Source of the DNA: Macrostomum lignano | Lineage: Eukaryota | DNA length: 64,000 bases | Assembly: GCA_002269645.1 (NCBI GenBank) | Contig: NIVC01000708.1 | Span: forward strand, 124,001-188,000 | Direction: 5' to 3' | Shown: in pieces, positions 5,290 through 61,137 of the stretch | How the letters are laid out: the number at the start of each line of letters is the position of its first letter | Numbering within the stretch: the first letter of the stretch is position 1 | Notes under the pieces: model-generated | The model's input: only the letters and a program-made list of their open reading frames with translations | What the model was told of the DNA's origin: nothing | The model's database searches: none | Made by a program: the position numbers and the translations under genes

Positions 5290-6683
5290 CTGGTAGAGTC
5301 GCTCGCTTGGCGAGAAGAATAAATAGAAAGCTTAATATCAACATTTGAATATGATTGCAATTTCTAACAACTTCAACGCGTTTTGCACGCCATGGTGCAT
5401 CGTCAGGATTTTATTAGAACGATTTGAGAAAGTGAGATTGAAAACGATTGATTAAATATTGGTTTTTGCAACGTACACAGGTAAGGAGGGTAAGATTGAA
5501 AACAATTGATTACAATTTGTCTTTAACAACATACATAGGTAGGTAGGAGAGAAAATTATAGATTGAGATTGAAAATTAAACCAAATGTACACAATTCCTG
5601 TTCAGTGGTCAAAAGGCAGAATCAGGGGCGGTAGCTTAAATAACTGAACGTCAAGTTAAGTGTACACAGCGTACACGACTGTGTCACTCACTGTTCAAAA
5701 AACGCGGAGAGTGTGACCTGCGCCACTATGTTGTAATTGGGTGTTGAGATTCGGGGTCTGCACTTGCCAAACCGGATGGTTGAAATTTGACTGCCAAATT
5801 ACAGGAGCCTGCAGCGAAATGCAGTAGAAATTATTAATATTATCAAAGCTCGCAATTATCTCCAGCTAAGATTGAACGCAAGCCAGCAATGAAGCTCCAA
5901 TTAGCAGGACTGATCTTCATTTTTATCTTGCAAGGATCGACCGCTGACAAGTCTGACACGAGTGAGTAACTGACTTTCTTGGTCTGACAATGAGTCATCG
6001 AAATCTCCTGATAGATACCGTGGTATCATTGCAGGCGAGTTCCCTATTCGAAGGAGCAGCGTGCTGAGCACCTGGCAGTCGTCTTTTGGCGACGGCCAGA
6101 CCTGCTTCTTCAACAGAAGCCCGACAGAGGAGGCCTCAGTTGTCAGTGACAAGCAGAAAAGCTACCGGTTCTTCCACAGCAAAGGCAAGAGCCAAGCTGA
6201 CGGCGGGTTTCACTGGTTCGCAGTGCAGCTGAATGAGCCAGTGCTCATCAGCTCTGTGACTGTGAAGGGCAGAGAGGGTGAGTCAGTCACTGTCTTTCAT
6301 ACTCGGCAATTTGCTGATACTCCTAAATTGGGAAAAATTCACTTCAGACGAAGCTAAATACACCTACAACCGAGTGATCGACATTGAAATTTGGACATCG
6401 AGCTGGAGCAGGCGGGTGTTCTCCGGCGATGAGCACTGCACTTCAAGAAGCATGAGCGGGCAGTTCAATGATTCACTGCCAAAATGGACACTTTGCGGTG
6501 TGATTAACAGCTCTCTGGACAGCATCACTCGTGGTGAACTCATCACTGTGTCCTGCGTGAATGGGGTGGGTTCTGTCAATAATGCAGGCTAAATTACTGC
6601 CAAACTGCAACTACAGCAGGTGAACTGCTTTCAGACATCCGAGCCAGCGCATCACCTGCTGCTAAGGAAGGACGTGTCAGGCA

Positions 6684-7145
6684 AGAAGCCGGGCACAAAA
6701 AACGATGACGTCACGTCTTGCAGTTCGAGCAGCTCCACCTCCTGCCGCAACGCAGCCAGACGGTCGCTCCCCGCCCCCGGAGGCGCCTCGCCCGCGCTGC
6801 CGATGCCGTCTTCGGCGTCCGGAGCAGAAGTCATCTCGGAGTTGTTGAAGTCTTCGTCAGCTTGCTCTAAACCGAGTGCAGTAGACAAGCGCTTGGCAAG
6901 CTGTTGTTTGCGGCCCGTAGTAGGCAGGCCTCTGTTTCGCAGCTCAGCCTTGAGTTGGCGCACGGTTAGTCGCTTTGGGCTGGCACTCATGGCGGTGGCT
7001 GAGCAAAAAAATTGAGAAATGGCGGCGGAGCCAAGCCGGGCCGGGTGCAGAGGCTTTAAGCTGGCTGGCGTGGCCAACCCCCACACCTCAACCCCCCGCC
7101 AAAGTACAGCGATATGTACAGCGGCACCCTCCGGCGCGTCTAACA
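6684..7145 (-). mobile_element. SAP-domain ORF fragment, probable retroelement gag 5' end, inserted in receptor A
   Basis: LTVRQLKAELRNRGLPTTGRKQQLAKRL fits the SAP consensus and is followed by a coiled coil. The segment starts TGTTAG on the minus strand. Boundaries approximate. Confidence 0.55.
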
Positions 7146-7172
7146 CCCCTTACTCAGAGAGTAACGATTGCA

Positions 7173-8010
7173 TCACAACAGTCTTAGTGATTTCTCAGTC
7201 ATTCACAACAGTCAGTAATTTCTCAGTCATTCACAACAGTCAGTAATTTCTCAGTCATTCACAACAGTCTTAGTGATTTCTCAGTCATTCACAACAGTCA
7301 GTAATTTCTCAGTCATTCACAACAGTCTTAGTGATTTCTCAGTCATTCACAACAGTCAGTAATTTCTCAGTCATTCACAACAGTCTTAGTGATTTCTCAG
7401 TCATTCACAACAGTCAGTGATTTCTCAGTTATTCACAACAGTCAGTAATTTCTCAGTCATTCACAACAGTCAGTAATTTCCCAGTCATTCACAACAGTCT
7501 TAGTGATTTCTCAGTCATTCACAACAGTCAGTAATTTCTCAGTCATTCACAACAGTCTCAGTGATTTCTCAGTCATTCACAACAGTCTCAGTGATTTCCC
7601 AGTCATTCACAACAGTCTTAGTGATTTCTCAGTCATTCACAACAGTCTCAGTGATTTCTCAGTCATTCACAACAGTCAGTAATTTCTCAGTCATTCACAA
7701 CAGTCTTAGTGATTTCTCAGTCATTCACAACAGTCAGTAATTTCTCAGTCATTCACAACAGTCTTAGTGATTTCTCAGTCATTCACAACAGTCTTAGTGA
7801 TTTCTCAGTCATTCACAACAGTCTTAGTGATTTCTCAGTCATTCACAACAGTCTTAGTGATTTCTCAGTCATTCACAACAGTCTTAGTGATTTCTCAGTC
7901 ATTCACAACAGTCTTAGTGATTTCTCAGTCATTCACAACAGTCTTAGTGATTTCTCAGTCATTCACAACAGTCTCAGTGATATCTCATTCATTCACAACA
8001 GTCTCAGTGA
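7173..8010. repeat. 28-30 bp minisatellite (GATTTCTCAGTCATTCACAACAGTCTTAGT)n
   Basis: Direct inspection; ends just before the TM-exon acceptor at 8040. Confidence 0.97.
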
Positions 8011-8983
8011 CCTCTCATTCACTCTCTCTCGCACCTGCAGCCTCATCGCCGAACTCAGCCAGCAACGCAACCTTCTCAGCAACTGTGTCGGCCCTCGTAT
8101 TTGTTTTAACCGCCCTAATCTGCGGCTTCGCTCTGGTCAGTAACTGGTCAATTTGATTTTTTTTGACAGGTAGGTAAGAGAATAACCGAATTTCGAATTC
8201 CAGCTGAAGCTGAAACTGAAGAGCAGACAGTTGCAGTCCTCAAGTCCCGCAGCAAAGCTGAGCAATGTGCCAGAGAATCCGGCTGGCGTTGCTAAGGCAG
8301 TGCGCAAGGTGAGAGGCATCTGACCCCTGTACAGAATACTGCTGTGATGGCTCAGGCAGGAGCAGGGAAGCTCAGTGGTACACGATTCCCCGCATTCATT
8401 TGGGCATTGTGCTCAAAAATAGGCCATTGGGTTTTCATGCATGCACAGACTGTACATGCCTGATGATTACAGTCAGGGCCGCTGTACACCCCGCATGAGC
8501 GTGTGTGTGAGTGCCTGCTCCTGCGAATATTGAAACTTCGAATGCTCAACAACTGATGAGCAATGATGAATTGATGATGAAATCCGAGCCGGCTCCACCG
8601 ATTTCAGACGGAGCCAACGCTGCGACCGCGCGTCACCGCCCGCAGCTGCGAGCCCGAGTGCAGCTACCTGTCGGTGGATCCCAATGCCGAGCCCGCCGAC
8701 AACTCGGACAGGAATTCGGACACCGCAAGCGACTGCACCGTCTATTTGGAAATTGTGGCCGATGCCAACTAGCGAGCTGCTTCAATGATCATCAGATTCC
8801 TCACCTTGCATGCACTGCATCTGTGTACAGGGCACCTGTTCTTGAGTGCGAGCTGAAATTTGTTTTAATGAACTCAAGCAATTGTTCAGTTTCAACGGTT
8901 AATACTCGTATTCAGCTCAAATACATCTTTGAATTTCAAAATGAACTCTGACCTCTCGATGTCCATTGCCGGGCACCGGCGCT

Positions 8984-10102: not shown

Positions 10103-14479
<4,377 letters not shown>

Positions 14480-14692: not shown

Positions 14693-15561
<869 letters not shown>

Positions 15562-15854
15562 TTACTATGCGCAGCTGTTTACAAATATTACGAATTATTT
15601 ACGAATAAATTCAACATTTGAAATGACACACAAACAGGCTATATTTAACACATAAGATAAGATAAACCAAGTGTTGATGGGGGTGATGTTGCTGGCTTAT
15701 TTATAAAATACAAAACTATAATTTTAAATATCACTTGCGAATTTGGGTTTTAAACAGAAACATATTTCCCGAAGTTACACATTTCAAACTGACAAAGTTT
15801 ATATAATCTACGGCTCGTATTCAAACATGCCAAGCAATGGAGGTCTGGTTCGCA

Positions 15855-18800
15855 ATGGCAGACCTGTTGCTGCTGCTGCTGCTGCTGCTGGTCCAGACAG
15901 CCGCGCATGCTGAAGTTGGAGCAAACTGTGAGTTCTGCATGAGCAATGAATGTCAGCATGAGTCAAAGAATGTAAGTGCTCAATCTGTGCTCATCATTGC
16001 AGGCGAGTTCCCCATTCGCAGGAGCCGCGTGCTGAGCTCCTGGCAGTCGTCTTTTGGCGACGGCCAAACTTGCTTTTACAACAGAAGCCGCACTGATGAG
16101 GAATCCGTGCTCAAAAACAAAACCTTTAGCTACCGGTTCTTCCACAGCAAAGGCCAGAGCTCAGCGGACGGCGGGTTTCACTGGTTCGCAGTGCAGCTGA
16201 ATGAGCCAGTGCTCATCAGATCTGTGACTGTGAAGGGCAGAGAGGGTGAGTCACTCACTCAAATGCGTGCTCCAAGTCTGCTGTCTCTGCTCACGGTGCT
16301 CTCGCATTCCAGATGAAGCATCGAAAGTCTTTAAAAGAGCCAGGGGCATTGAGATCTGGACATCAGACAGCAGCAGCCAGCTGTTCTCAGGAGATCACTG
16401 CAGCTCAAGGAGCATGAGCAGCCAGTTCAATGCATCACTGCATCTCTGGAGACTGTGCGGGCTGACTGAGGGCGGCCCAAGCATTTCCGCTGGTGAAAAT
16501 TTCACAGTGGATTGCATGACTGAGGTGACATGACATGACATGACATTTCAATTTTATACTGTAAGTATATATTTATTAGCGAAATCTATAATGAAGAATA
16601 ATAATCTTAGTGATGGTACTGCATTGTGATAACTGTTTTAACCATACTACTTAGGAAGTAGAATAAACAACCTGTTGCAGAGTTGTTAGAAAGTTGTTTT
16701 TCAATAACAAATTCTCAGGCGAGGTATCTTCTTCTTAGAAGAATCATTACAAACGCGGACGTCTCGAGCTCTCTTGACTACACGAGTTTCGCTGACCTCC
16801 GGCTTCAAAAGTTGCAGCTGAGTAAGTCAGGACTGTGGTGATTGCAGTTGCTCAAGTGTCAGAAATATCGTACCTGAACTGCTGCTACCTGTGAAAAATT
16901 CTACGTCTTAGGGATCTCAGAAGCTCAACTCGTTGCGGAGAACTCCAGCTTCACAATGGATTGCTCATTGGGCTGCACAGGCCAGTCGGATGCTGGCTTA
17001 GCAGCTCTGATGCAGCTCTGCTTTCCGAACGGCAGCTGCAATGCATCACGGGAGCTGCGGATACCCAGAGCGCAGCCTCAACACGCTGGAAACTACACCT
17101 GCAGACTGGGCTCTGTGGAGAGGCGCACTGCGGTCTCTGTGCTGTGTGAGTGCAGACTTGGCATGGGCTGGCAAGCATGTCTCTGTGCTGTGTGTGCAGA
17201 CTTGGCATGGGCTGGCAAGCCTGTCTCTGTGCTGTGAGTGCGTGACTGTGTGACTTGGGATGGGCTGTCAGGCATGTCACTTTCATTTTCTACTGACACA
17301 TTTCTGTCAGATCCAAATCGATGCCTTTAATTTTATGGTGGTGGCAACTAATCCTGAGAAAAGCATATCTTGTCAATCTTCTATTCGTTATTGATAAATA
17401 TGACCATTTTTATTTTGAATTCTAATTCGGTAACTTACTGACTTTTGCAGCAGTCTCCCCGCGTCAAGTGGTGATGAAGGGCTCCAAGCTCACTATGAGC
17501 TGCTCGCTGCACTGCAACGACTCAGATCTGTGCTCAAACTCAAGCGGACTGCATCTCTGCTTGCCGAACGGCAGCTGCACAGGCAGTCACAGGATGGCCG
17601 TTGCTGTGGCGCAGCCTCAGCACTCTGGAAACTACACCTGCAGACTGGGCTCTGTGGAGTCTCGAACTTCGGTCACCGTGCTGTGTGAGCTCTTTAAATT
17701 CTCTTCAAAAGTTTCTTATTACAGACAGGATATCACAGGTGGCTCAACATGCACTCAGATTTAATATTTTTCAGACCCCCCATCGAGAGTGTCAGTGTCA
17801 GTGCTGAATTTCAACAGCTGTCAGAACCTGTCAGATGTCATCGTGCAGTTTACATCAACAGAGTCTGAGCCAATCTCCGAGCACAGATGCGGCGCAGAAG
17901 CTGCTGGAATTGAAATGCAGAATCTCACACTCATTCACCAGGTTGGTTTCACATTCGTCAATCCAAAAGCTAGCCTTATTTATTTGCTCAATTGACTGTG
18001 ACGGGTGCGGGCTTGCAGAGCTCTAGCGAGAACGGAACCATCAGCCAGTGGGTCCCGGACTCGAGCCTGCAAAGCGGCGGTGTCATCTCCATAAAGTGCA
18101 TCGCTCAGCAGCAGCTCCCGCAGCAGCTCGGCTTTTGGGTATTGAGTCACGAGTCTGTGGAAGCCATCTGCACAGAACCGGAGATTTTGAGTTCCCTGTC
18201 CATTGCGATTGCCGCTGCCACAATTGGCGGTGCAGTCGCCCTGTCTGCTGTGTTGGTTGCGGTTGCGGCCGTGGTGAGAAACTGTTGGACACTTCGACCT
18301 TAATTCTTCCCTTAACTGCATGATTTACTGCTCAATGCTATTCCTGTTGCAGCGGATTTCCCGGCGGTCTCGTTCCAGAAGTTCGCCATCTGCCAGGCTG
18401 AAGATCTACTCAATTGTGCAGGTCAACTCCATGATGATCCCGTACGATGCGCAGCCGACAGATGCTGTGAGTGCCATGCGTTTTATTTTCTTTTTAATAA
18501 ATCTTTGCAACCAGTCATTTAAAAAACTATTGAACTCAAATTTTGAATTATTCCTGTTTGTGAGTTACACGAACAGTTACACAGTGTGAACAAAATTTTT
18601 ATGGATATTTTTTGTTTTACATAAAAAATTCTGCTAAATTTCTCTATCTCTACTTTCAGTAACTGATACCTTATATCTAAAATGAGTTCCGAAAGATATA
18701 AACAAGTGACCGGACTTCATTGGGGGCAGAGAAGCTCAGCAGTAAACGCTGTTGGATCCATGAAGCTTGAACTTTTGTTGTTTGATTTGATTTTGATTTT

Positions 18801-20353
18801 TAAGTTGGAACTGCTCTCGTCGGCATTCCGAGTGTCATTAGTCAAGTAGGAACTGCTCTCGTCGGCATTCCGAGTGTCATTAGTCAAGTTGGAACTGCTC
18901 TCGTCGGCATTCCGAGTGTCAATAGTCAAGTTGGAACTGCTCTCGTCGGCATTCCGAGTGTCATTAGTCAAGTAGGAACTGCTCTCGTCGGCATTCCGAG
19001 TGTCATTAGTCAAGTTGGAACTGCTCTCGTCGGCATTCCGAGTGTCAATAGTCAAGTAGGAACTGCTCTCGTCGGCATTCCGAGTGTCAATAGTCAAGTT
19101 GGAACTGCTCTCGTCGGCATTCCGAGTGTCAATAGTCAAGTTGGAACTGCTCTCGTCGGCATTCCGAGTGTCATTAGTCAAGTTGGAACTGCTCTCGTCG
19201 GCATTCCGAGTGTCAATAGTCAAGTTGGAACTGGCCTCGTGGGCATTCCAGGCGTCACGTCCGGTAGTAGATTAGTCCAGTTGTTGACTGGGCCACCCGC
19301 AGCTTGGGCTAGCCCCCACCCCCAGCTTTGATGACACTTGCTGCGTTGGATATGGTCATCATGCGCACTTCATGAACTTCCGATCTGTTCCACAGCTTCA
19401 ACTGCAGCGCCAGCGTACTCCCATGAGTGCAGCACTGCCTGTACTCAAGCACTCCTGGGCGGAGTTTGACTCCCCTCAACTCAACTCAAGAGGATGATGA
19501 TGCTCAGGTTTCTCAGGCGCGGTTGAATCACCGTTCATAGCATATTTGACAAAGTCGTCATGAATGAGAAGGAAGCCAGCGTTCTTCGTATCACGGCTTC
19601 GGACTTGAACGAATTGAAGCGCGGTCAGTGTTTGCTGTCGTACGCGTGACTTTGATTTAGCGGGTTGTCTTTGTTACAGCATCCGAGTACGCGAACATGC
19701 CAAATCGGTTCTGCACAATGTCCACGGCGAAGTTTGCTACTCCGTCCAAAAATAGCACCTCCGTTCTTGATGAGGCCAGTCACATAGAGTCAATAGTGTG
19801 TTTGGAGTCGACATTGGTCATGCCGATGACTTCGATCCGACAATGTCCACTGTCCAGAGTTCGTCCGAATCTCTCAGTTCCTTTTCAACTTTTTAATTTC
19901 TCATTGCTCTCTACGCTCGGGTTTGCTTGTACAGCAAGTACACCTAAGGCAAAAAATAATCAAACAACAAAAGTTCATGCTCGGCAGATTCAACAAACGC
20001 GTCCGACCCTCGCGACACGACCCCTTGCTTGGTGCGCGGCTGCATTCATTTAGGGCTTGTGCTCAAAATTGGCCAGGGGCTCAGGCTCGATTCACAGCCA
20101 TGAGGGCCAACCCCCCCCCCCCCACAACGCTGGTTGTGGGACGGTGGGTGTTTCTACTCGGACCTACACAAGCACCGCATTGAAACATTTGCAGGCCTGC
20201 TGTTGCACGGAGGAGCTGCCAGAGTGCAGCTACTTAACAATAATCCCACCTGGAGGTCAGGCAGAGGCCACCACAGCCGATTTGCAGGACTCTGCCAGCG
20301 AATGCACCGAGTTTATTGAGATTCTGGCTGATGGAGAGATTGAAGACTCATAA
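15855..20353 (+). CDS. Receptor C: SP - F-type lectin - 2 Ig - C2-like - TM - tail (intact)
   Basis: Exons 15855-15927, 16003-16245, 16313-16524, 16719-16821, Ig 16912-17145 and 17451-17684, 17775-17941, 18019-18273 (TM), 18353-18466, 20195-20353. Tail ECSYLTI...ECTEFIEILADGEIEDS*. Confidence 0.85.
18802..19233. repeat. 42-bp minisatellite, ~10 copies, in the last intron of C
   Basis: Unit AAGTTGGAACTGCTCTCGTCGGCATTCCGAGTGTCA(A/T)TAGTC. Confidence 0.95.
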
Positions 20354-45242: not shown

Positions 45243-45991
<749 letters not shown>

Positions 45992-46993: not shown

Positions 46994-47398
46994 CAGGATT
47001 CAGGAGTCAGGATTCAGGAGTCAGGAGTCAGGAGTAAGGAATCAGGAGTCAGGATTCAGGAGTCAGGAGTCAGGATTCAGGAGTCAGGAGTAAGGAATCA
47101 GGAGTCAGGAGTCAGGAGTCAGGAGTAAGGAATCAGGAGTCAGGAGTCAGGAATCAGGAGTCAGCAGTCAGGAATCAGGAGTCAGGAGTAAGGAATCAGG
47201 AGTCAGGAGTCAGGATTCAGGAGTCAGGAGTCAGGAATCAGGAGTCAGGATTCAGGAGTCAGGAGTCAGGATTCAGGAGTCAGGATTCAGGATTCAGGAG
47301 TCAGGAGTCAGGATTCAGGAGTCAGGAGTCAGGATTCAGGAGTCAGGAGTCAGGATTCAGGAGTCAGGAGTCAGGAGTCAGCAGTCAGGAGTCAGGAA

Positions 47399-47432
<34 letters not shown>

Positions 47433-47433
47433 A

Positions 47434-47467
<34 letters not shown>

Positions 47468-47531
47468 ATCAGGAGTCAGGAGTCAGGAATCAGGAGTCAG
47501 GATTCAGGAGTCAGGATTCAGGAGTAAGGAA

Positions 47532-47572
<41 letters not shown>

Positions 47573-47573
47573 A

Positions 47574-47609
<36 letters not shown>

Positions 47610-47615
47610 AAGGAA

Positions 47616-47663
<48 letters not shown>

Positions 47664-47706
47664 ATCAGGATTCAGGAGTCAAGAATCAGGAATCAGGAGT
47701 AAGGAA

Positions 47707-47796
<90 letters not shown>

Positions 47797-47825
47797 ATCA
47801 GGATTCAGGAGTCAAGAATCAGGAA

Positions 47826-47880
<55 letters not shown>

Positions 47881-47895
47881 ATCAGGAGTCAGGAA

Positions 47896-47929
<34 letters not shown>

Positions 47930-47958
47930 ATCAGGATTCAGGAGTCAAGAATCAGGAA

Positions 47959-47992
<34 letters not shown>

Positions 47993-48021
47993 ATCAGGAG
48001 TCAGGAGTCAGGAATCAGGAT

Positions 48022-48062
<41 letters not shown>

Positions 48063-48070
48063 ATCAGGAT

Positions 48071-48104
<34 letters not shown>

Positions 48105-48133
48105 ATCAGGAGTCAGGAGTCAGGAATCAGGAT

Positions 48134-48181
<48 letters not shown>

Positions 48182-48203
48182 ATCAGGAGTCAGGAATCAG
48201 GAT

Positions 48204-48241
<38 letters not shown>

Positions 48242-48252
48242 AGAATCAGGAA

Positions 48253-48286
<34 letters not shown>

Positions 48287-48315
48287 ATCAGGAGTCAGGA
48301 GTCAGGAATCAGGAT

Positions 48316-48356
<41 letters not shown>

Positions 48357-48385
48357 ATCAGGATTCAGGAGTCAAGAATCAGGAA

Positions 48386-48419
<34 letters not shown>

Positions 48420-48448
48420 ATCAGGAGTCAGGAGTCAGGAATCAGGAT

Positions 48449-48503
<55 letters not shown>

Positions 48504-48523
48504 ATCAGGAGTCAGGAGTCAGG
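46994..48523. repeat. (GGAGTCA/GGAATCA/GGATTCA)n 7-bp satellite between genes F and G
   Basis: Direct inspection. Confidence 0.98.
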
Positions 48524-48924
48524 ATTTTTGTTTTCACATTTTTGCTGCACTCGGAAAGATTTAAATTAAGGGCAGTCAGTAATCCGGACAAAGTCGGGGA
48601 AGTCCGGACAAAGTCGGACAGTATATCCGAAACTACGAGCGCTGGGTCGGAATCGAGCTTCCATTGCTGGCACTCTGCCTGAGCTTTCTGTTGATTTGGT
48701 TCCTGAACTTCCTCTTTTCCTCATGATCAACAGAACAGCAGGTAAGATGGCGAGTTTTTACTAAAAAATTCCACAGTTGACTATGTTTAAAATCAAAATT
48801 TCATTCACCAAAAATATCTTAGATTCAACTTCAGCTGTGTAAATTTCAACGCGGCACGGAGTATTCGAGATTGGTAGGCATTCAAATTTTGACATAATAC
48901 ATTAATAAATAATAAATCAAGCTA

Positions 48925-49482: not shown

Positions 49483-52400
49483 ATGAAGCTGACTCTGCTG
49501 CTGCTGCTGCTGCTGGCATTGCTCTGCGCACGAGCGACTGACACGTGTGAGTTGAGTGCCGGTTTGTTGTAATCGCAGACAGAGAGCACTGCTCATCCCC
49601 ATTGCTCCAACTTGCAGGCGAGTTCCCAATTCGTTGGAGCCGCGTGCTGAGCACCTGGCAGTCGTCCTTTGGAATCATCTTTGGAGAACCCACGTGTTTC
49701 TACCAACGAAGCAGGTCGCGTGAGGATTCCTTACTAAACAATATAAGATACAAATTCTTCCACAGCAAAGGGCAGGGCGAGGCAGACGGCGGGTTTCACT
49801 GGTTCGCAGTGCAGCTGAATGAGACAGTGCTCATCAGATCTGTGACTGTGAAGGGCAGAGGCGGTGAGTCACACACTCAAATGCGGGCTCCAAGCCAGCT
49901 GTCTCTGCTCACGGTGCTCTCACATTCCAGATAAAGCATCGCATGTCTTTGAAAGAGCCAGAAGCATTGAGATCTGGACATCAGACAGCAGCAGTCAGCT
50001 GTTCTCAGGAGATCACTGCAGCTCAAGGAACATGAGCAGCCAGTTCAGAGAGTCCCAGCAGCACTGGAGACTGTGTGGGGTCACGGAGAGCAACAATTCA
50101 CAGATCGCGGCTGGGGAGATCTTCACAGTGAACTGCGTTGCAGAGGTGAGTTTTGGAGCGAGTTCTGGTAACCATCGCAACCGATTTCGCAACACCAACG
50201 CAACCACTTCAGGTGCGGCAGTTGCTTCTGCGAAGAAACGTTACAGCTGCTTCAACTGACCACGGCTTCATGAGCTTCGCGGACCTGCGGCTTCAAACGC
50301 TCCCGCTGAGTAAAAGCAGCTGTTCTCAAATGTTTGCTTCTTTGATTACGCGAAAAAAAACAGTTATTGAGCCCTCTAATTTTATCTGAGATGGGATACT
50401 CCCCTTTGCCTGAAGTCCTCAAAAAAGAAGATGCTAGCATGTTCCCTTTTACCATTTAGCCTGTACAGTAATAAGTTTTTCAACCGAGACTGCTAGGATA
50501 GATTTATCAGTGCTCATTAAAAATTGATCCAAACATCTCGCTTTCAGACATTTCAAGCCCTCAACTGGTGGCAGAGCAGTCCAGCTTTGAAGTTCGCTGC
50601 TCTCTGCAATGCGATGGAGCTGATCACCTGAGCACACACTCAGCCAAGTTGCAGCTGTGCTCACCAAACGGCAGCTGCACCGTCAGGAACCAGCTGAAGG
50701 TCGACAGAGCTCAGCCATCGCACTCTGGAGTTTACACCTGCAGAATTGGCTCGATAAATCAATCGCAATCCTATGTGAGAGCCTGATGTAGTTTGAGTTT
50801 GCTCTTATTAGTTCCTTAAATATTAACCTGCCTGTCACAGTTAAAATGTTCCTATAAATTAAATATAGACAGCTTTTAATACGGAGACCTTGATCATGCC
50901 ATTTCGTATCGCATTCCAGCGTCATCACCAAACCAAGTGGTTGCTGAGAACTCCAGCCTCACGCTGAACTGCACTCTGCACTGCGGAGGCGGCGATGCAG
51001 CTCAGTGCGCAGACTCCGCTGCTGTCGGACAGCTGCTGCTGTGTCGCCCCAACACGACCTGCACAGCACAGACGAGTCTGCAGATCCCAGCGGCAACTCC
51101 AACACAATCGGGAGACTACAACTGCAGCATTGGACAGGTGGTTGCTGTCACAAGTGTGGCTGTTCTCTGTGAGTAGCAGCTTTGCACCTGAGTGGTCAGT
51201 CACTGTCTGCATGTACATCGCTGACAAATGAAGTCATTCCTGTTTGTTATTTTACAGCTGCAACGCCGCATCAAGTGGTCCCTGAGGGCTCCAGCCTTAA
51301 CCTGAGCTGCGTACTGCATCATGCGGGCTCAGCTGATTTCCGCCAGCCTCAGCTGTGCTACCCGAACGGCAGCTGCTCAGCCGAGAGCTCGATAAGCGTT
51401 GCCAGTGCCAGGCCATCGAACTCCGGTCTCTACAGGTGTCGGCTCGGCTCACTGGAAATACCGTCACTTGTTGCTGTGCTGTGTAAGTTGCTCAGATCAT
51501 CTTACACTTTCTTGCACTCTCAGTTTCTGAACAAGAACTGATCAGTTTCTCTGTGGATCAGTAAGTGATCAGTCTCCAGATTCATTCTTGTACAAAAGTA
51601 AGAGTTTCTCTACTGACAAGTGTAGCATGCTTAAGCAGGCAGTTCGGGCACCTATAGTTTGCACTCCGTGACCCCCACCCAGCCTATCCACTTCCCTCTG
51701 CTCGAGCACATCCCAACGCGCACTCAATGAACTGGTAATCTGTGTTCTACCAGACAACACTCGTTAATATACAGACACAGCCACATTCTATTTCTCCACC
51801 TTTTTGAGTGGCTAACTATGCACTCGCAACAACCAGCTAGAGTTGCTCGCTACAACAAGTAGAAAGCAATGAGTGTGGCGATTTATTTCTGCATGCAAGG
51901 CAAAAAATGTGACCAAGTAAGAGAGCAGAGTTCTGGTAGGAGTTCCGACTTGAGCTTGGATGAAGGCGTACGAGTATGAACATGATCAGAAAAATCCATC
52001 TCAGGGTCGATATTCTACTCGTACTTTTAAGCAGCTGTGCACTCCAAGTGGGGACCGCCGACACAATCAGCAGATTCACATTGCTCATGTGAAACATCTG
52101 TCAAAATTACTTCAAGTCGCTGTTCTGAGTGAGTCATTGATTAGCTTAAAATGCTTTCACTAAAGATGACAAGGATGCATTCGATGGGACACGCAGATTT
52201 TTTCCACCCAAGAACTTCCATTTCAATAGAATAGAAATAGGCTCAGCTTGAATACATTTATGAATCTGAACTTTATTAAATTCCCAGCTTCATCTCCAAG
52301 CCAGAAAGTTTCCGAAAACGCAAACTTCACCGTGAGCTGCTCGCTGCACTGCGGAAATGCATCGCAATGCTCAGATCGCTTATTGGGTGGCGACCTCCGG

Positions 52401-55400
52401 CTGTGCCCTCCGAATGGGAGCTGCCTGACAAATTCAAGTCTGCAAGTGGACAGAGCTCAGGCAATGCACTCCGGAGTTTATACTTGCAGATATGACGTCA
52501 TTGAGATCGAGACAGAAGTCTTTGTTCTTTGTAAGTAGAAAGTAGGCTGCCTTCAGAATCTTGTTGCTCAGTATTGCTCAATGTTGCTCAGTGTTGCTCA
52601 GTGTTGCTCAATGTTGCTCAGTGTTGCTCAGTGTTGCTCAGTGTTGCTCAGTGTTGCTCAATGTTGCTCAATGTTGCTCAATGTTGCTCAATGTTGCTCA
52701 ATGTTGCTCAATGTTGCTCAATGTTGCTCAATGTTGCTCAATGTTGCTCAATGTTGCTCAGTGTTGCTCAATGTTGCTCAGTGTTGCTCAGTGTTGCTCA
52801 ATGTTGCTCAGTGTTGCTCAATGTTGCTCAGTGTTGCTCAGTGTTGCTCAATGTTGCTCAGTGTTGCTTAGTGTTGCTCAGTGTTGCTCAATGTTGCTCA
52901 GTGTTGCTCAATGTTGCTCAGTGTTGCTCAATGTTGCTCAGTGTTGCTCAGTGTTGCTCAATGTTGCTCAGTGTTGCTCAATGTTGCTCAGTGTTGCTCA
53001 GTGTTGCTCAATGTTGCTCAATGTTGCTCAGTGTTGCTCAATGTTGCTCAATGTTGCTCAGTGTTGCTCAGTGTTGCTTAGTGTTGCTCAATGTTGCTCA
53101 GTGTTTCTCAGTGTTGCTCAGTGTTGCTCAGTGTTGCTCAGTGTTGCTCAATGTTGCTCAGTGTTGCTCAGTGTTGCTCAGTGTTGCTCAGTGTTGCTCA
53201 ATGTTGCTCAATGTTGCTCAATTTCACAATCGATTAACTCACCTTCATCAGGTGAGTTCCCAATTCGGCGAAGTCGCATTCTGAGTTCGTGGCAGTCCTC
53301 ATTCGACGATGGTCCGACGTGTTTCCACAGCAGGAATCAGGCAGACGAAGCCTCCATCATCAGCAACAGGCAAACCAGCTACAAGTTCTTCCACAGCGCC
53401 AACAGAAGCCAAGCAGACGGCGGGTTTCACTGGTTCGCCGTGCAGCTGAATGAGCCAGTGATCATCAGATCTGTGACTTTGAAGGGCAGAGAGGGTGAGT
53501 GAAAGACAACTTACTGCTTCTTTCTGCCTTAGGCTTCTGTAAAGACTGAGTCTCCTGCTCTGAAGATTCCACCGTACAGTAATATGTTTCAGTAAGATCA
53601 AAAGTAACTCCTCATCTTATTTTCAGACGGTGTGATGTATAATTATAATCGAGCAAAGGACATTGAAATATTTACCTCCAACTGTAGCAGCTCCCTGATC
53701 CATGGGGACAACTGCAACATCAGAAATATAAGCCTTCAGTTTAAAAATTCGATGCACCATTGGAGGCCATGCGGCGTGACTAAAAAGCAGGGAGACTTCG
53801 CAGATGGGGAAATGTTTCACGTGAAATGCGTTGCTGAGGTAAAAATATTTCAAATGTCTGCAGTGATTTGAGTCTTATGGTCTCTTAAAGCAACCTGAAA
53901 TGATGAGCATTTAAACTGCAGGTCCGAAGTCTACTCCTGCGAAGAAACGTGTCTAAAGACACGGACGGGCACATGAGCTTTGCTGACCTGAGGCTTCAGA
54001 CTGGGCAAATCAGTAAGATTTCTCGACTGTCATGAGTTGTGTCCAAGTCCTGGTATGTGTGCTAAGTTGAAACGCTGAAAGTACGAGCTGTAAGCAAAAT
54101 GACTGAATTTCGTCTCAAAGGTGTCTCAAAAATTGCATTTCAGAAGTCGAGAGCCCCAAGGCGGTGCTGCAGCACTCAGCATTCTCAGTGCGCTGCCTGT
54201 TGGACTGCAACGGTCGAACCGAATACTCACCAGAGTTGGAGCTCTGCTTTCCAAACGGAAGCTGCGTTGGACAAGCTGAAGCCGTCATTCACAGGGCGAA
54301 ACTGTGGCACCATGGCAGCTACACGTGCAAGCTGGGCAGCTCGCGGAGCTCAAAGTTCTTAACGGTGTTTTGTAAGTTGATTCCTGCCTCTGGATGACAG
54401 TCGATTGATTAGCATTTGGTAAGCAGCGTTTCACTGGGACTCCTCTCGTACACAGATTGGGACAAAATTCTCAGTGTATGCTCACAAGGAGTGCAAGCTT
54501 AAGGCTGACTGGTGGCAGTAGGAGCAGCCATCAACGGCAGCAGATCAGGCTGCATTTCAGGTCACTTCCCTATTAGCCTTTTATCCTTACAGGGTATGTC
54601 AACTAAGTCCGGAAAGGGAAACGGATTGTCAAAGGGATGGTTTCTCTCTCGGACGCCATTATTGGATCCACCAACCAGTGTAGAACGATCGATGGAGATG
54701 TGTACATATTCAAAATATTCACATAGACTTTTGCATTCAAATGATGTGGAGTAACTTCTATTCATCTTCGGTACGGTATTCAATACGTATCGATCCACGG
54801 CCTAAATAGGTTTGAAAAAATCATGAAAACCATCAGATAACTGAAAAGCTTATTGATCGAACTTGATGAACTCCATTCCCCTTTTTAATATGCTCACAGA
54901 CCCGCCATCAAGCGCATCAATTTCTGTACTCAATCTGCCAACCTGCGAGAACTCATCCGACGTATTGGTACAGTTCGCATCGTCTGCATCTCTACCAGTG
55001 CCCGAGCACAGATGCGGCGCTGTTGGTGGCGGATTGGAAGTGCGAAACCTCACGCAGCTGTCATTTGTAAATTGCTTGCATTTTGCAATTTCACACTATG
55101 AGTGACTATCCGCTGACATGCTGACCAGCGAGCTTCATCAATTCCAGAGCTCGAGTGGAGACGGTTGGGTCAGCACGTGGGCACTGGCGATCGGGGGGAA
55201 GCTGAGCTCAGAGTGGCTTGTGGGCCTCGTCGAGTGCAGCGCAGTGCAGAATCTGCCGCCGGAGATCCGGTTCAAGACCGAGCACAGGGCCTCAGCTTGC
55301 TACAGCTGCGGCAATCACAAAGGTCTCATCAAACCTGATGTGCAGTCCTTACGCATGTACATTTCACAGTTCCTGTACGGATTTCTAACAGCAACTGCTC

Positions 55401-55757
55401 TGCTAAGTGTGCTCTTGCTTGTCTTGGGCTCGGTGAGTAACCCCTCTCTCTACATTATATTTTCCGTCTCTGTGCTCTAAGCTGCCGTGTTGCATCTGCT
55501 AAATTCAGTTTTCAGTCATCAAATTCAGAGTAAAGAAGTCGTGGAAAAAACAAACTATTCCAATGGTAAGCTTTGGTTTTCTCATTCTGTACAGTCGACT
55601 CAAACTGTGACAGCTAAAGTTCGAACTCTTTGCGCTTTAGTCCGATCGATCCACGACGCCCGGATCTGGAGCACCGGTTGCTGCCGCTTCTGCTGCCATG
55701 GAGTATGAGAACTCTGGTTACAACCTGGAGGATGCTACTGGTGTCTACGTGATCTGA
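49483..55757 (+). CDS. Receptor G: SP - L1 - 4 Ig (first frameshifted) - L2 - Ig - C2-like - TM - type-2 tail
   Basis: SP 49483-49546; L1 49618-49863, 49931-50145, 50213-50309; Ig 50548-50774 (227 nt, apparent 10-nt deletion), 50920-51168, 51258-51482, 52288-52530; L2 53252-53494, 53627-53838, 53922-54012; Ig 54144-54371; 54900-55066; 55148-55432 (TM); 55509-55565; 55641-55757 (MEYENSGYNLEDATGVYVI*). Intact if the first Ig exon is skipped. Confidence 0.75.
52562..53221. repeat. 10-bp tandem (TGTTGCTCA[AG])n upstream of lectin L2 of G
   Basis: Direct inspection. Confidence 0.97.
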
Positions 55758-55778
55758 GGGTTTTCAAGCTGGCAAAGT

Positions 55779-56733
55779 GATCCTGATCCTGATCCTGATA
55801 CCGATCCTGATCCTGATCCTGATCCTGATCCTGATCCTGATCCTGATCCTGATCCTGATTCTGATCCTGATCCTAATCCTGTTCCTGTCCTGATCCTGAT
55901 CCTGTCCTGATCCTGTCCTGATCCTGATCCTGGATCCTGATCCTGATCCTGATCCTGATCCTGATCCTGATCCTGATCCTGATCCTGATCCTGATCCCGA
56001 TCCTGATCCTGATCCTGATCCTGTTCCTGTCCTGATCCTGATCCTGTCCTGATCCTGTCCTGATCCTGGATCCTGATCCTGATCCTGATCCTGATCCTGA
56101 TCCTGATCTTGATCCCGATCCTGATCCTGATCCTGTCCTGATCCTGATCCTGTCCTGATCCTGTCCTGATCCTGGATCCTGATCCTGATCCTGATCCTGA
56201 TCCTGATCCTGATCCTGATCCCGATCCTGATCCTGATCCTGTCCTGATCCCGATCCCGATCCTGATCCTGATCCCGATCCTGATCCTGATCCTGATCTTG
56301 ATCCCGATCCTGTCCTGATCCTGATCCTGATCCTGATCCTGATCCTGATCCCGATCCTGATCCCGATCCTGATCCTGATCCTGTCCTGATCCCGATCCCG
56401 ATCCTGATCCTGATCCCGATCCTGATCCTGATCCTGATCCTGATCTTGATCCCGATCCTGTCCTGATCCTGATCCTGATCCTGATCCTGATCCCGATCCT
56501 GATCCTGATCCTGATCCTGATCCCGATCCTGATCCTGATCCTGATCCTGATCTTGATCCCGATCCTGTCCTGATCCTGATCCTGATCCTGATCCTGATCC
56601 TGATCCTGATCCTGATCCTGATCCTGATCCTGATCCTGATCCTGATCCTTATCCTGTCCTGATCCCGATCCTGGTCCTGATCCTGATCCTGATCCTGATC
56701 CTGATCCTTATCCTGATCCTGATCCTGATCCTG
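55779..56733. repeat. (GATCCT)n satellite immediately 3' of gene G
   Basis: Direct inspection. Confidence 0.98.
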
Positions 56734-57249
56734 AGCCTAATTCGATTTATTGTTCTCAGTTCATGAGGATGTGTTTATCCCAGAGCTAGATTTACCGTAC
56801 ACATAGGCCAATATATTTTATTTTACTGCGCTTAATACACATTAGAAATAATGACGCAACACTCCCGAATACTGTAAAGCAGTTTTGAAGCCGACAATTC
56901 AATTACCAATACCACCTGATCTGTTTGATGCGGAAGCAAAATTCTTTTGATAGCTTTTTCAGAATTTATTCACAATTCACTTTTTTTCCAATAAACCATA
57001 TGATATATAGTATTAGCCAATGCTAAACATAGCTGTGTCTTAAGCTACATCATATCTAGCCTAAAGTCCAAAAGCTAAGCACTGCAGGTCATTTGATGTT
57101 TTCAACAGTTTAATATTGGTCCAAAACTTTTTAAAACAAATTTATATTACCATACCTAATTTCATACTAAATTATATTCAAAAAACAACAATATACACCT
57201 CTTGCCGGCCACAAGTGGTCACAGAGGGGGGAGGTGTCAGAACACACGT

Positions 57250-58095: not shown

Positions 58096-58489
58096 CAGTA
58101 ATAATCTGCAGTACATGTACAAAGACCAGTAAACTGAGACAGTGTACCATTAAATTCGCATCTGGATTTTTGCACTTTCGAATTCCAAATAGAGCTGTCA
58201 GGCGAAATTTCAGCTGTTCCTGTCTGTTTGAAATTATTGAGTTATAGTTTAATAAAAGTTTCATCATTAAGCAACGATGCATTGCATAAATGCAAAAGAA
58301 AACTCTATTTCAGCAATTCCTATACTGGAGTTAAATTGGAGGAGTAAGTGGGCGCAGGGCCCAAACCGATATTTAATGGTATTTATACCAGACATTAACT
58401 TTGGGGGGTTGAGCCCAGAATAATAAGGAAAGGGGGGCGGAGTGCGCAACTGAATAAGAATAAGAATAACAAGATTGAGCTAGACAGAG

Positions 58490-58748
58490 GGCCTTTTCAT
58501 ATTGCTTGTTCTGGATCCAGAACCAGAACCAATTTGTGAAGTATAACTTTTTGTCTCCATAACTAGAGGGAGATACGTGCTATAAAGTTTTTATTATTGA
58601 ATGACAATCGCCAAGAAGAAAGTGAAAAATTGTTTTAAGTAAGGTTGTTAAGGCAGTCAAACATTCAACAGAGTCAAATAGTTATACTGCTGTTTTTCTT
58701 GGAAGATCCGAACCGATTCTGGTTCTGGAATTGGTAATATGAAAAGCC
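58490..58748. mobile_element. Possible MITE with imperfect TIRs
   Basis: GGCCTTTTCATATT..TCCAGAACCAGAA versus TTCTGGTTCTGGAA..AATATGAAAAGCC; no clear TSD. Confidence 0.4.
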
Positions 58749-59173
58749 TCAGAGAGAGAGGTGAACTAAGAAATGACTAGGAAAGTCGCGACACCTGCAG
58801 AGTCAGAGACGGCCAAGCAAACTCAGTCCCCATCGGAGCCAGGAAACCCAAATATGATTTTCGTCGCTTATACAAACCAAGTTCAGTTTGGCCAAGGACT
58901 TCTATTATCTAGAAGTCCTTGGTTTGGCTAAGCTGCAGCCAGAAAGTTTGTAAACATTTTATTTCAACTTGCAGTCTTATACACAGATGGAACTTGTAGT
59001 CACCACCTGCCGGAACAGAACTTGCGACTGCAGTCCTGCCCTGTAGAGCGCATCAATCAATGGTTTCTGCAGCCAAATACAAAAGCCAAGACACAAGATC
59101 AAAATGGATTCTTTTTTGCTGCGCTTGTTGTACTAACGACAGATTTGCTTTGAAGTGATCAGCAAGTGTCTGC

Positions 59174-61137
59174 ATGATGGAAGCTGCAGCGCTGATCTCC
59201 CTGTTAGGGGCTCTGCTCTGCATCGCTACCTGTCTCTGCGACTGTGAGTGAAAGCTTTTTAAACCCTCCAGGGTGTTTTTTCAAGCGAAATGGATTTCTA
59301 ACTTCTCAAGTTCCTATGTTGCAGGTGAGGTGCCGATTCGCAACAAGACTGTACTCAACGCCTGGCAGTCCTCTTATTCCTATTCTTGCTTTCACGAGAG
59401 AGACCAGCTGAATGAGAGCAATGTTCTGAACACAAGCCAAAGTTTTCAGTTCATTCACAGCAATGACAAAAAGCATTTTAACGATAGCGGATTTCACTGG
59501 TTCGCTGTGCAGCTGAGTGAGTCAGTGCTCATCGGTTCTGTGACAGTGAAGGGCAGCGAGGGTGAGTTACACCACAGACCAGTTTTATGAAGCACTGATT
59601 GACTAGTTGGTTAACTTACTTGACATAGCTTCAGGGGGTCCGGGCATCCGGATGCAGCGAGGCGTCGCCGCCCATTTTGCAAACCCCTGGCGACCAGGGA
59701 AGCTGGTGCTGCGGTGTTCTGCAGGGAGATCCGGTGGTGCCAGTGTCCGCAGCGCGGTAGCCCTTAGGTAGCGGACGAGCTGGCAGAGATTCTCGGGCCT
59801 GAAAACGTCGGAGAGGTTCGAGTTTGGGCCGAGGTAGGTGAAGCCTGTCCTGAGTAAAGGCGGAGCATTCACAGATGAAGTGCTCCGCATTCTCGACACC
59901 GGAGAGGCAGAAAGGGCATCATTCCTCGCTACGGATTTTTCCTGAAGGTAACGATGCCTGGCAAAACAGCCATGACCCGAGAGGTCCATGGTCACCGCCC
60001 TGATGTCCCTGCGGTTGAGTCCAAGCAGGACTCTTGGCTAGTTGGTTGGTTTCATAAAAACAGCAGCTGCTTTTTGAAACAAAATAACTGAGGTAGCAGC
60101 ATTCCTGAAACCCCCTTGCTTCCGGTATTTTTACAATCTCGTTGTTCTGGCTATAATTTCAGTCTTCTCGGATGCTGAAATGTTCCGCAGCTCAGCTGGC
60201 ATCGAGATCTGGACTTCGAACTCGGAGGAGCAACTGTTTTCTGGCAACCATTGCAACTCAAAGAATATGAGCAAACAGTTTAATAAATACCGGAGCAGTT
60301 GGAAGCGTTGCGGCGTCACTACAAATAGGTCGATGAGTAGCACGCGTGTTGGGCTCTACATAGTGGACTGTCTTGCAGAGGTGAGCATTGATGCTACAGA
60401 GATTATGTGCTTAATTAGTTCATCTCACCCGGATCTCAAAATGTTGAGTGCAACATCCCAGGTCCGGTATCTACTGCTCAGGAGAAACGTCAGCCTGAGC
60501 TTCTCATCCAGAGACTACGGCTATCTGAGCGTCTCAGATCTGACGCTGCAGACAGTGCGCCTGGGTGAGGCTGTGGACTTTCCCAAAGCACTTGAAGACC
60601 AGAGAAGCCTCAAAAGTGGCATGAAAATACCTGATAATATTGTGGGCTTTGGCCTGACTTTCCACTCATCAGGCTTGTGCACTCTCTGTGCATTGGGGGC
60701 TGGCCTTCATGGGTCATGAATGACACGAGAACTCCCACGGTAAATAGCATTATAGCATTAAAGTATAAATGTATATGACTTGATTTGCAGTGCCATCGAC
60801 AGACCAACTTGTTGCTGCAAACGAAAGCTTTAACGTGAGCTGCTCGTGCATTCTATGCAACGGCACGGAGTTGAGCACGAACTCAAGGCAGCTGCAGCTG
60901 TGCCAACCAGACGGAAACTGCACGAAAACCCGGAAGCTGTCGGTTGTGAAGGCACAGTCGCAGCACTCTGGCCTCTACACCTGCCAGCTTGGCTCTGCCG
61001 CAGAGTCAACTTCCGTCACAGTGCTGTGTGAGCTGAGTGTCATTGCTTGTCTCCATATTTAAATACAATTAATAGACAAAAAGCAACCATAACGTGTTGA
61101 ATTTTCAGCATCCTCGCATGCGCAAACAGCAGCCGAG
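59174..61137 (+). pseudogene. Receptor H (5' part): SP - lectin - Ig - second Ig exon interrupted by BEL/Pao insertion
   Basis: Exons 59174-59243, 59325-59561, 60163-60380, 60462-60564, Ig 60791-61027; next Ig exon starts at 61109 (ASSHAQTAAE) and is cut at 61137. Confidence 0.8.
59613..60037 (-). mobile_element. 5'-truncated I-group-like LINE 3' end in an intron of H
   Basis: [22 protein letters not shown] and [18 protein letters not shown], same type as 46330-46993. 10-bp TSD CTAGTTGGTT at 59603-59612 and 60038-60047; AAGT tail. Confidence 0.8.

Follow-up and report, generated by a model that had tools for sequence, protein, structure and literature searches.

The 64,000-nucleotide stretch of Macrostomum lignano DNA analyzed here (the window; GenBank assembly GCA_002269645.1, contig NIVC01000708.1, positions 124,001 to 188,000 of the forward strand) has a GC content of ~48% and contains many microsatellites. 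Eight paralogous multi-exon genes, designated A to H and all located on the + strand, were distinguished between positions 5889 and 61027. They follow a common plan: (i) a signal peptide (SP), (ii) one to three units, each composed of a three-exon lectin-like domain and zero to seven immunoglobulin (Ig) exons, (iii) a membrane-proximal domain, (iv) a transmembrane (TM) segment, and (v) a tyrosine-bearing tail (Table 1). An earlier reading of this locus, made from the letters of the DNA (hereafter the sequence-only reading), had proposed eight co-oriented paralogs with one to three lectin units, beginning at position 5889. Our tblastn searches and splicing gave the same count, the exon-to-protein architecture was as described there, and position 5889 is the ATG of gene A. 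The plan it assigned to all eight genes applies overall, with these departures: gene A has no Ig exon, a tail lies within the window in only seven of the eight genes, and five genes are damaged.

Four exon-type translations, taken from the raw list of open reading frames (ORFs), were used as tblastn queries against the whole window. They detected 12 copies of the lectin-like domain and more than 25 Ig-like exons of ~78 amino acids, all on the + strand (E-values of the lectin and Ig exon copies from 1e-9 to 1e-55). Three clear exons (lecA, lecB and lecC) were recognized in nine of the lectin-like copies; the third exon of the A and C copies was located via reading frames, and that of the first copy in gene E (E1) is weak. 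Each of the 25 delimited Ig exons has AG and GT flanks, a length divisible by three and phase 1-1. In nine lectin modules the first, second and third exons have phases 1-1, 1-0 and 0-1, respectively, with a total length divisible by three. Their splice sites are canonical except for a single GC donor (GCAAGT at 36901, second lectin module of gene E), which belongs to the sole GC-AG intron; all other modelled introns are GT-AG. Seven SP exons end in a phase-1 donor GT[AG]AGT preceded by T, and the eighth is that of gene H. The codon split at the SP/lectin junction, and likewise at the junction of an Ig exon with a lectin, usually encodes the Cys before EFPIRR. The final C that appears conserved in the Ig exons of the raw ORFs derives from the GT of the donor and is not a coded residue. 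Downstream of the Ig exons, the complete genes contain a two-exon membrane-proximal domain, with the TM segment at the end of its second exon, and a terminal tail exon; a small basic juxtamembrane exon is present only in some genes. The spliced ORFs of genes B, C and D run uninterrupted from ATG to stop. An origin of the repeats as transposon-borne or chance ORFs was rejected, as it is excluded by the phases, the splice sites and the long open spliced frames.

Table 1. Coordinates of the genes, lectin-like modules, tail motifs and duplicated block in the window (aa, amino acids; tail classes are defined in the text).
Feature	Position	Strand	Composition
Gene A	5889-8772	+	SP 5889-5961; lectin exons 6035-6277, 6348-6565 and truncated third from 6635; no Ig
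Gene A, 3' part	8037-8772	+	short stalk and TM ~8037-8135; juxtamembrane exon 8204-8308; class I tail exon 8608-8772
Gene B	10103-14479	+	SP, lectin, 3 Ig, membrane-proximal 11979-12145 and 13217-, TM, class I tail; 617 aa, open
Gene C	15837-20353	+	SP, lectin, 2 Ig, membrane-proximal, TM, juxtamembrane, class I tail; 603 aa, 10 exons, open
Gene D	21207-32967	+	SP, lectin-2Ig-lectin-Ig-lectin-4Ig; 1345 aa, 20 exons, all GT-AG
Gene D, 3' part	31674-32967	+	membrane-proximal and TM 31674-32137; juxtamembrane 32224-32283; class I tail 32818-32967
Gene E	35102-39912	+	SP, lectin (third exon damaged), Ig, lectin, 6 Ig, membrane-proximal, TM, class I-like tail
Gene F	41237-44876	+	SP, lectin, 1 Ig, membrane-proximal, TM, class II tail 44721-44876
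Gene G	49483-55757	+	SP, lectin, 4 Ig, lectin, 1 Ig, membrane-proximal, TM, class II tail 55641-55757
Gene H (partial)	59174-61027	+	SP 59174-59243; lectin 59325-59561, 60163-60380 and 60462-60564; 1 Ig 60791-61027
Lectin-like module B	10297-10959	+	3 exons
Lectin-like module C	16003-16821	+	3 exons
Lectin-like module D1	22116-22959	+	
Lectin-like module D2	24753-25503	+	domain used for the structure model
Lectin-like module D3	26101-27590	+	
Lectin-like module E1	35225-35978	+	third exon damaged
Lectin-like module E2	36372-37076	+	
Lectin-like module F	41380-42090	+	frameshifted
Lectin-like module G1	49618-50309	+	
Lectin-like module G2	53252-54012	+	protein 94% identical to D2
Lectin-like module H	59325-60564	+	
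Ig-minisatellite-lectin-Ig block, gene D	23956-25863	+	blastn
Copy of this block, gene G	52165-54378	+	blastn
Class I tail motifs, A	8653-8772	+	ECSYLSV ... CTVYLEIVADAN, stop
Class I tail motifs, B	14369-14479	+	DCSYLTV ... CTEFLEIVADGD, stop; Phe replaces second Tyr
Class I tail motifs, C	20219-20353	+	ECSYLTI ... CTEFIEILADGEIEDS, stop
Class I tail motifs, D	32842-32967	+	ECSYMLV ... CTVYEEIVGDGD, stop
Tail motifs, E	39820-39912	+	ECSYYTVV ... DGYQEMVADGD, stop
Class II tail, F	44820-44876	+	EYENSEYKLENATGIYIL, stop
Class II tail, G	55698-55757	+	EYENSGYNLEDATGVYVI, stop

The damage differs from gene to gene. Gene A, whose model is identical to the UniProt/UniRef entry A0A1I8H6B9 (P0004), has ~700 bp of extra DNA where the homeolog has ~95 bp, and its last lectin strand (MSFADLRLQ, kept in the homeolog P0034/L001) is lost as a result. 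Inside this extra DNA lies an antisense ORF with a SAP domain (6652-7146, - strand; Pfam E 2.5e-11). In gene E no in-frame acceptor precedes the conserved RHLLLRK strand in the third exon of the first lectin, and one Ig exon has a mutated acceptor (~37807); with that third lectin exon trimmed, the frame is open over 1097 amino acids. In lecB of gene F, the frame is shifted by 1 nt within a run of G near 41725; the database proteins P0005 and P0033 show the intact reading of this exon. In gene G, the frame is broken in the first Ig exon (50553-50756) and open if this exon is skipped. No family exon was found in the window after the first Ig of gene H, and a retroelement gag-pol ORF begins at 61449. 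In the protein of gene B, hydropathy peaks at residues 542-575. This 850-aa ORF (61449-64000, + strand), which leaves the window, encodes a DUF1759 gag-like domain, a zinc knuckle and a protease-like part, and belongs to a BEL/Pao-type retroelement. Situated ~420 bp past the last exon, the element probably truncates gene H.

These frameshifts, the unusable and mutated acceptors, the deletion/insertion in lecC of gene A and the cut in gene H, together with introns filled with retroelements and long microsatellites, would suit a largely decaying pseudogene array whose functional copies reside elsewhere in the duplicated genome. We consider this very improbable, since genes B, C and D are open over 10-20 exons with canonical splice sites, and all compared exons of the homeologous A, B and C copies are open. 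Moreover, gene F is off by one base in a homopolymer, as is typical of errors in long-read assemblies, and has intact counterparts in the databases; the damaged Ig exons, having phase 1-1, can be skipped without loss of frame.

The closest relatives of the N-terminal (tip) domain are F-type lectin domains (FTLDs), as the sequence-only reading had maintained. When a 16-sequence family profile was compared with PDB, the six best matches were all FTLDs: 3CQO (MsaFBP32 of striped bass; E 4.8e-5), 1K12 (eel agglutinin, AAA; 1.1e-3), 3LE0 and 4GWI (Sm-hPAF of S. mitis; ~2e-3), and 2J1R and 2J22 (the fucolectin-related SpGH98 FTP of S. pneumoniae; 0.06-0.16). The first match outside the FTLDs was a CBM32 at E 1.5, and no animal F5/8C domain appeared up to E 10. 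Only the family profile found these relatives; a single lectin-domain sequence gave no match in PDB, and Pfam, applied to single sequences, reported F5_F8_type_C below threshold in six of the 16 members (e.g., 25.7 bits vs. a cut-off of 28.2). The alignment to AAA is gapless over residues 45-81, with identical F45, H47, W60, V63, L65, I71, S73-V74-T75, R79 and D81, and in this register the earlier mapping of FHS, HWFAVQL and SVTV.GR onto the AAA core is essentially right.

An AlphaFold2 (AF2) model of the D2 lectin-like domain was obtained with a predicted local distance difference test score (pLDDT) of 70 and a predicted template modelling score (pTM) of 0.73. In Foldseek it matched CBM32, F5/8C and the F-lectins 3cqo and 1k12 (E ~1e-4 to 2e-3, TM-scores 0.35-0.47). 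The model supports a predicted fold of the galactose-binding-like superfamily; at these TM-scores the F-type topology is not separable from that of CBM32 and F5/8C. In the HMMER, AlphaFold and Foldseek check suggested by the sequence-only reading, the profile supports an FTLD and the model supports the superfamily, with the F-lectins not ranked at the top structurally. A CBM32 or generic discoidin identity of the tip, which the structure search does not distinguish from an FTLD, is disfavoured by the sequence profile, where FTLDs come first.

The putative binding site was compared with the published FTLD definition, i.e., the fucose motif H-X24-R-X-D-X4-(R/K) and the Ca2+ motif hhDGx (PMC5712786). 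In the HMMER register, the column of AAA His52 is mostly occupied by Ser, otherwise by Gly or Lys, and the canonical His is absent. R79 is kept in 11 of the 12 lectin-like copies, and R-x-D is retained by A, B, C, D2, E1, G1 and G2. From there to the closing basic residue the distance is 7-10 residues, vs. 4 in the fucose motif, to which the copies do not conform. An Arg five residues before the EI strand is found in the position of AAA Arg86. There is no hhDGx: AAA A36-I37-D38-G39-N40 faces ASIISN, ETVLNS or ESVLKN, with DG at this place in no copy. Nor is the vicinal pair Cys82-Cys83 present, as no copy has Cys-Cys after R-x-D; some accepted FTLDs also lack this pair (F-type lectin review). 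Of the F-type lectin tip proposed earlier, the homology therefore stands, and the canonical site is lacking in part (His52, Cys82-Cys83 and the Ca2+ motif). Since the fucose site is incomplete, the term F-type lectin is used here for homology and not for lectin activity. In our reading the tip would be a divergent FTLD homologue with a remodelled binding site, for which carbohydrate binding is plausible.

The Ig repeats are true Ig domains of the C2/I-set, as the sequence-only reading had stated. Across 22 Ig exons C17 and C66 do not vary, and G62 and Y64 hardly do. The Ig profile had 572 matches to the Ig superfamily (IgSF) in PDB (best E 7.9e-10), dominated by Ig cell adhesion molecules (IgCAMs; titin, MDGA1, contactin and Robo). 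The Ig AF2 model (pLDDT 89) gave C2/I-set matches in Foldseek at TM-scores of 0.6-0.72, and Pfam reported Ig_2 in gene C (38 bits vs. a gathering score of 27). Besides the canonical B-F pair, there is a family-specific extra Cys pair in LC.PNGSC. The two exons of the membrane-proximal domain have the patterns YPPS.VS.SV...C....V.V.F.SS.S.P..H.C and ..S.W......C.A.Q.LP..I.F....C, respectively. This domain has no Pfam match, and its V.C.A.Q.LP..I.F segment gave a single, weak and non-significant match, to IgM CH1 (E 0.44).

Discoidin (F5/8C) domains bind protein, collagen or lipid in discoidin domain receptors (DDRs), neuropilins and coagulation factors. The genes could likewise serve in cell-cell recognition or adhesion (neuronal, epidermal or gamete), with an FTLD-like tip co-opted for protein, collagen or lipid, and would then not be immune lectins. 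We regard this alternative as possible, if doubtful. It would suit the loss of the fucose-binding His, the Cys-Cys pair and the Ca2+ motif, the fact that Pfam sees the tip only as a weak F5_F8_type_C, and the long Ig stacks, which are typical of IgCAMs. However, most copies retain the two arginines of the FTLD sugar pocket as well as its aromatic pair, and the copy number, tandem expansion, shuffling and damaged copies are more like those of environment-facing receptors than of conserved adhesion molecules. Furthermore, no orthologue was found in our searches outside Macrostomum-like organisms.

The seven tails present in the window, read by eye, fall into two classes: class I in genes A-E and class II in genes F and G. 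Class I has the form ..ECSY[LMY]x[VI]...C-T-x-[Y/F]-x-E-I-V-A-D-G-D, followed by the stop codon. Class II has the form [E/D]YENS[E/G]Y[K/N]LE[N/D]A.G[I/V]Y[I/V]x at the C-terminus, contains YxN and is also found in the database proteins P0005, P0008 and P0033. The tails were scored against the consensus of the immunoreceptor tyrosine-based inhibitory motif (ITIM), (S/I/V/L)xYxx(I/V/L), and switch motif (ITSM), TxYxx(V/I). A strict ITSM occurs in two of the seven tails, A (TVYLEI) and D (TVYEEI), and a strict ITIM in one, that of gene E, by a register shift (SYYTVV); the second motif of E is DGYQEM. The first class I motif is not a strict ITIM because of the Cys at position -2. The term ITIM/ITSM-like, used by the sequence-only reading, is therefore loose for these tyrosine motifs, with the strict consensus in these few cases and a different tail in F and G.

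All class I tyrosines (YLSV, YLTV, YLTI, YMLV, YYTV, YLEI and YEEI) fit Y-x-x-hydrophobic, and a live, if rather unlikely, rival is therefore that the tails carry YxxPhi clathrin-adaptor sorting signals of endocytic or scavenger lectin-type receptors, by which glycosylated food, microbes or debris would be internalized. The Phe in place of the second Tyr in genes B and C would agree with this, as it argues against an obligatory paired phosphotyrosine switch. Against it, YxxPhi is a very loose pattern, the flanks of the tyrosines (EC-S-Y and C-T-x-Y-x-E-I-V-A-D-G-D) are conserved far beyond the needs of a sorting signal, and the YxN and C-terminal GxYxx of class II are atypical as such signals.

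The distribution of the family is narrow. An exhaustive search of 1.84 billion representative proteins with hidden Markov models (HMMs) found 22 family representatives, 15 of them below 1e-10; all named relatives are from M. lignano, the remainder being one weak bacterial F5/8C-like match and one metagenome contig. A word-indexed homologue search returned only three fragmentary M. lignano models. The metagenome contig (L002; JGI 3300040801, Ga0450804_0569779) is 1.6 kb long, has a GC content of 39% and encodes lectin-lectin-Ig, with the first two lectin exons fused into one, and the family therefore occurs in one further eukaryote at least. Among the proteins of M. lignano, more divergent members have an SP, a lectin domain, other Ig-like domains, a TM segment and a tail. 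The names that UniProt gives to relatives (Sushi, CUB, MATH, Fibrinogen C-terminal and IRS-type PTB) were dismissed as automatic mis-namings, as Pfam scans of P0013, P0016, P0020, P0021 and P0008 did not reproduce them.

A second A-B-C cluster, homeologous to that of the window and 89-97% identical to it, is located on GenBank contig NIVC01002544.1. The A-type homeolog BOX15_Mlig012084g1 (P0034) is a GenBank protein from an annotation built with RNA-seq, and its SP, lecA, lecB, lecC, TM and tail junctions are the same as those of gene A. Through this homeolog, the exon joins and the TM product have indirect transcript support. On the homeologous contig L001, ~8 kb upstream of gene A, a family fragment (half of a first lectin exon and a piece of Ig; 1937-2196, - strand) lies in the opposite orientation and adjoins a protein kinase gene.

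Paralogous lectin domains share 44-60% identity, with the exception of D2 and G2 (94%). The two latter modules belong to a block of ~2 kb, composed of an Ig exon, a 10-bp minisatellite, three lectin exons and an Ig exon, over the length of which, with its introns, genes D and G share 92-94% identity. This is direct evidence of module transfer by unequal exchange or conversion, and it accounts for the way in which symmetric phase-1 modules can give rise to multi-lectin proteins. The minisatellite (TTGCTCAGTG; 24345-24721 and 52562-53220) occupies the intron just 5' of the lectin exon and has 38 copies in D vs. 66 in G. It runs in frame into lecA (LLSVAQCCS repeats), which accounts for the raw ORFs of 213 and 313 aa. 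Between the window and its homeologs, the ratio of non-synonymous to synonymous substitution rates (dN/dS) was 0.62 for the lectin exons, where 28.5 non-synonymous and 12.5 synonymous differences were counted, and between 0.3 and 1.3 in the Ig exons, with few substitutions in both. These values indicate weak constraint on the lectin and Ig exons and give no proof of positive selection.

Several other elements lie in and between the genes. An LTR (long terminal repeat) retrotransposon (718-5289) is situated just upstream of gene A, with direct repeats at 718-973 and 5034-5289 (96.9% identity) and inner ORFs on the - strand for gag/aspartyl protease, reverse transcriptase and integrase; the homeologous contig L001 lacks this ~5-kb insertion. 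A 2.3-kb intron of gene D contains a single-exon ORF of 243 aa with a signal peptide (29595-30326, - strand). Its N-terminal part is PAN/apple-like (weak Pfam PAN_3/PAN_4; E 0.03 to Eimeria microneme protein 5), and its C-terminal half is C-type-lectin-like in look (GGWFWTSC...WLTGQPDD), with no library confirming this. Long pure arrays were found at 12160-13182 (ATTG)252, 14693-15560 (TAC)289 and 42794-43956 (ACTG)291, the last in the intron of the membrane-proximal domain of gene F, as well as at 46991-48524 (a 21-mer, x73) and 55778-56738 (a 6-mer, x162). Such microsatellite arrays in introns and between genes account for the majority of the long spurious ORFs on either strand. A 37-bp minisatellite (44379-44719; 9 copies, 99% identity) stops a single base short of the acceptor of the gene F tail exon (44721). 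Between genes F and G, an ORF fragment (46335-46991) that matches RNase H weakly and resembles a zinc knuckle at its C-terminus is probably a non-LTR retroelement remnant; a strong G-over-C skew surrounds it, at 44-48 kb.

The reading that we favour, and think probable, is that the cluster represents a lineage-restricted tandem family of type I membrane receptors in Macrostomum, with an FTLD-like tip, an Ig stalk and a tyrosine tail. One to three divergent FTLD-like beta-sandwiches would be placed at the membrane-distal end, held on C2/I-set Ig domains and followed by an Ig-constant-like membrane-proximal domain, a single TM helix and a short tail with tyrosine motifs of two kinds. We infer the ligand type, the signalling and the biological role from this architecture. 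The tip may bind an extracellular ligand, most likely a carbohydrate, via a non-canonical site that would keep Arg79, the Arg86 equivalent and the Phe45/Phe46 pair and has lost His52; avidity would be increased in copies with more than one tip. Engagement of the ligand could be read out by the tail through tyrosine phosphorylation and SH2 docking, or through YxxPhi-type sorting. Growth of the family would have proceeded by tandem gene duplication and by shuffling of symmetric 1-1 modules, the copying of the D/G block being a recent event.

Several observations weigh against this receptor reading. At least one exon is truncated or frame-damaged in five of the eight genes, which may represent decay or assembly indels, and the second tail Tyr is Phe in B and C. 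The lectin AF2 model has low confidence over its N-terminal 55 residues, and Foldseek ranks CBM32 first, with the F-lectins not above it (3cqo at rank 10, 1k12 at rank 27). Most of the canonical FTLD sugar and Ca2+ motifs are missing, and dN/dS between the window and the homeologs is just mildly below 1, with few substitutions. Lastly, the searchable literature and the supplements of two M. lignano expression papers, in which the transcripts Mlig012084, Mlig021334, Mlig026357 and Mlig014586 were looked for, contained no expression or localization data.

The sequence-only reading knew of no described family with this architecture, and none turned up in the literature that we searched on combinations of FTLD, Ig and TM/ITIM and on Macrostomum lectins. 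A 2017 review lists CTLD, pentraxin, CCP, TM and FA58C as partners of FTLDs and does not mention Ig (PMC5712786), and a 2025 F-type lectin review names immunoglobulin in unrelated contexts only. The novelty does not extend to annotation, as UniProt and GenBank already hold partial, fragmentary models of these genes, named "uncharacterized" or "Ig-like domain-containing". The domain combination is thus undescribed, and the receptor family is real, uncharacterized and lineage-restricted. To our knowledge, very little is known of cell-surface recognition receptors in flatworms. These genes offer a clean, testable candidate family in a species with transgenesis and RNA interference, in which known parts (FTLD-like, Ig and tyrosine tails) occur in an arrangement outside the reviewed FTLD architectures, and in which the D/G block catches exon-module shuffling in the act. 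If the tip binds glycans, the family would represent a striking convergence on the Siglec/selectin design and would offer FTLD variants of novel specificity; without glycan binding, the F-type fold would have been co-opted for another ligand.

With the known FTLDs (AAA, MsaFBP32, Sm-hPAF and SpGH98 FTP) the tip shares the gapless core and the predicted jelly-roll of the galactose-binding-like class. The spacing of its C110-C129 and C148 resembles that of Cys108-Cys124 and Cys146 in AAA, as judged by spacing and not by alignment. In contrast to these FTLDs, the tip has a loop after R-x-D that is extended by 3-6 residues and an additional segment, EFPIRRSRVLSxWQSS, at its N-terminus; it is encoded by three exons and set in a membrane protein with Ig domains.

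A membrane protein with an FTLD is known from Drosophila: furrowed/CG9095 combines it with a CTLD and CCP repeats, and its FTLD deviates from the basic triad (PMC5712786). Compared by description, furrowed/CG9095 resembles the Macrostomum proteins as a membrane receptor whose FTLD, with a deviating triad, is carried on a stalk of small repeated domains; it differs in having a CCP/sushi stalk and a CTLD, in being a single conserved gene, and in having no comparable tail motif. Snail fibrinogen-related proteins (FREPs) and other invertebrate lectin-IgSF families are likewise lineage-specific and tandem, and join IgSF with a lectin-type domain under duplication and exon-level exchange. FREPs, however, are secreted and have the IgSF part at the N-terminus and a C-terminal fibrinogen-related domain, whereas the flatworm proteins are membrane-anchored, with an FTLD-like tip and a tail of signalling type. 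Discoidin (F5/8 type C) receptors and neuropilins belong to the same structural superfamily and are also single-pass membrane proteins, but their other domains are of the kinase, CUB or MAM type, and their ligands are collagen or growth factors.

The vertebrate Siglecs are alike in having a tip, variable C2-type Ig spacers, one TM segment, a short tyrosine tail and a tandem cluster with pseudogenes. Glycan sensing, ITIM/ITSM signalling, immune function and rapid diversification are a reasonable hypothesis for the Macrostomum genes, partly supported by their sequences. That they form a full, independently evolved Siglec-like system of a flatworm, in which polymorphic and expanding glycan receptors with two tail outputs (ITSM-like vs. 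YxN) would discriminate self from non-self or detect microbes, we consider decidedly unlikely; if true, it would be the first lectin-Ig immunoreceptor family of such a kind in Platyhelminthes. The defining feature of Siglecs, an N-terminal V-set Ig domain that binds sialic acid by means of a conserved Arg, is replaced in the flatworm proteins by an unrelated FTLD-like jelly-roll, sometimes repeated, and we regard the resemblance to Siglecs and selectins as one of analogy, without homology.

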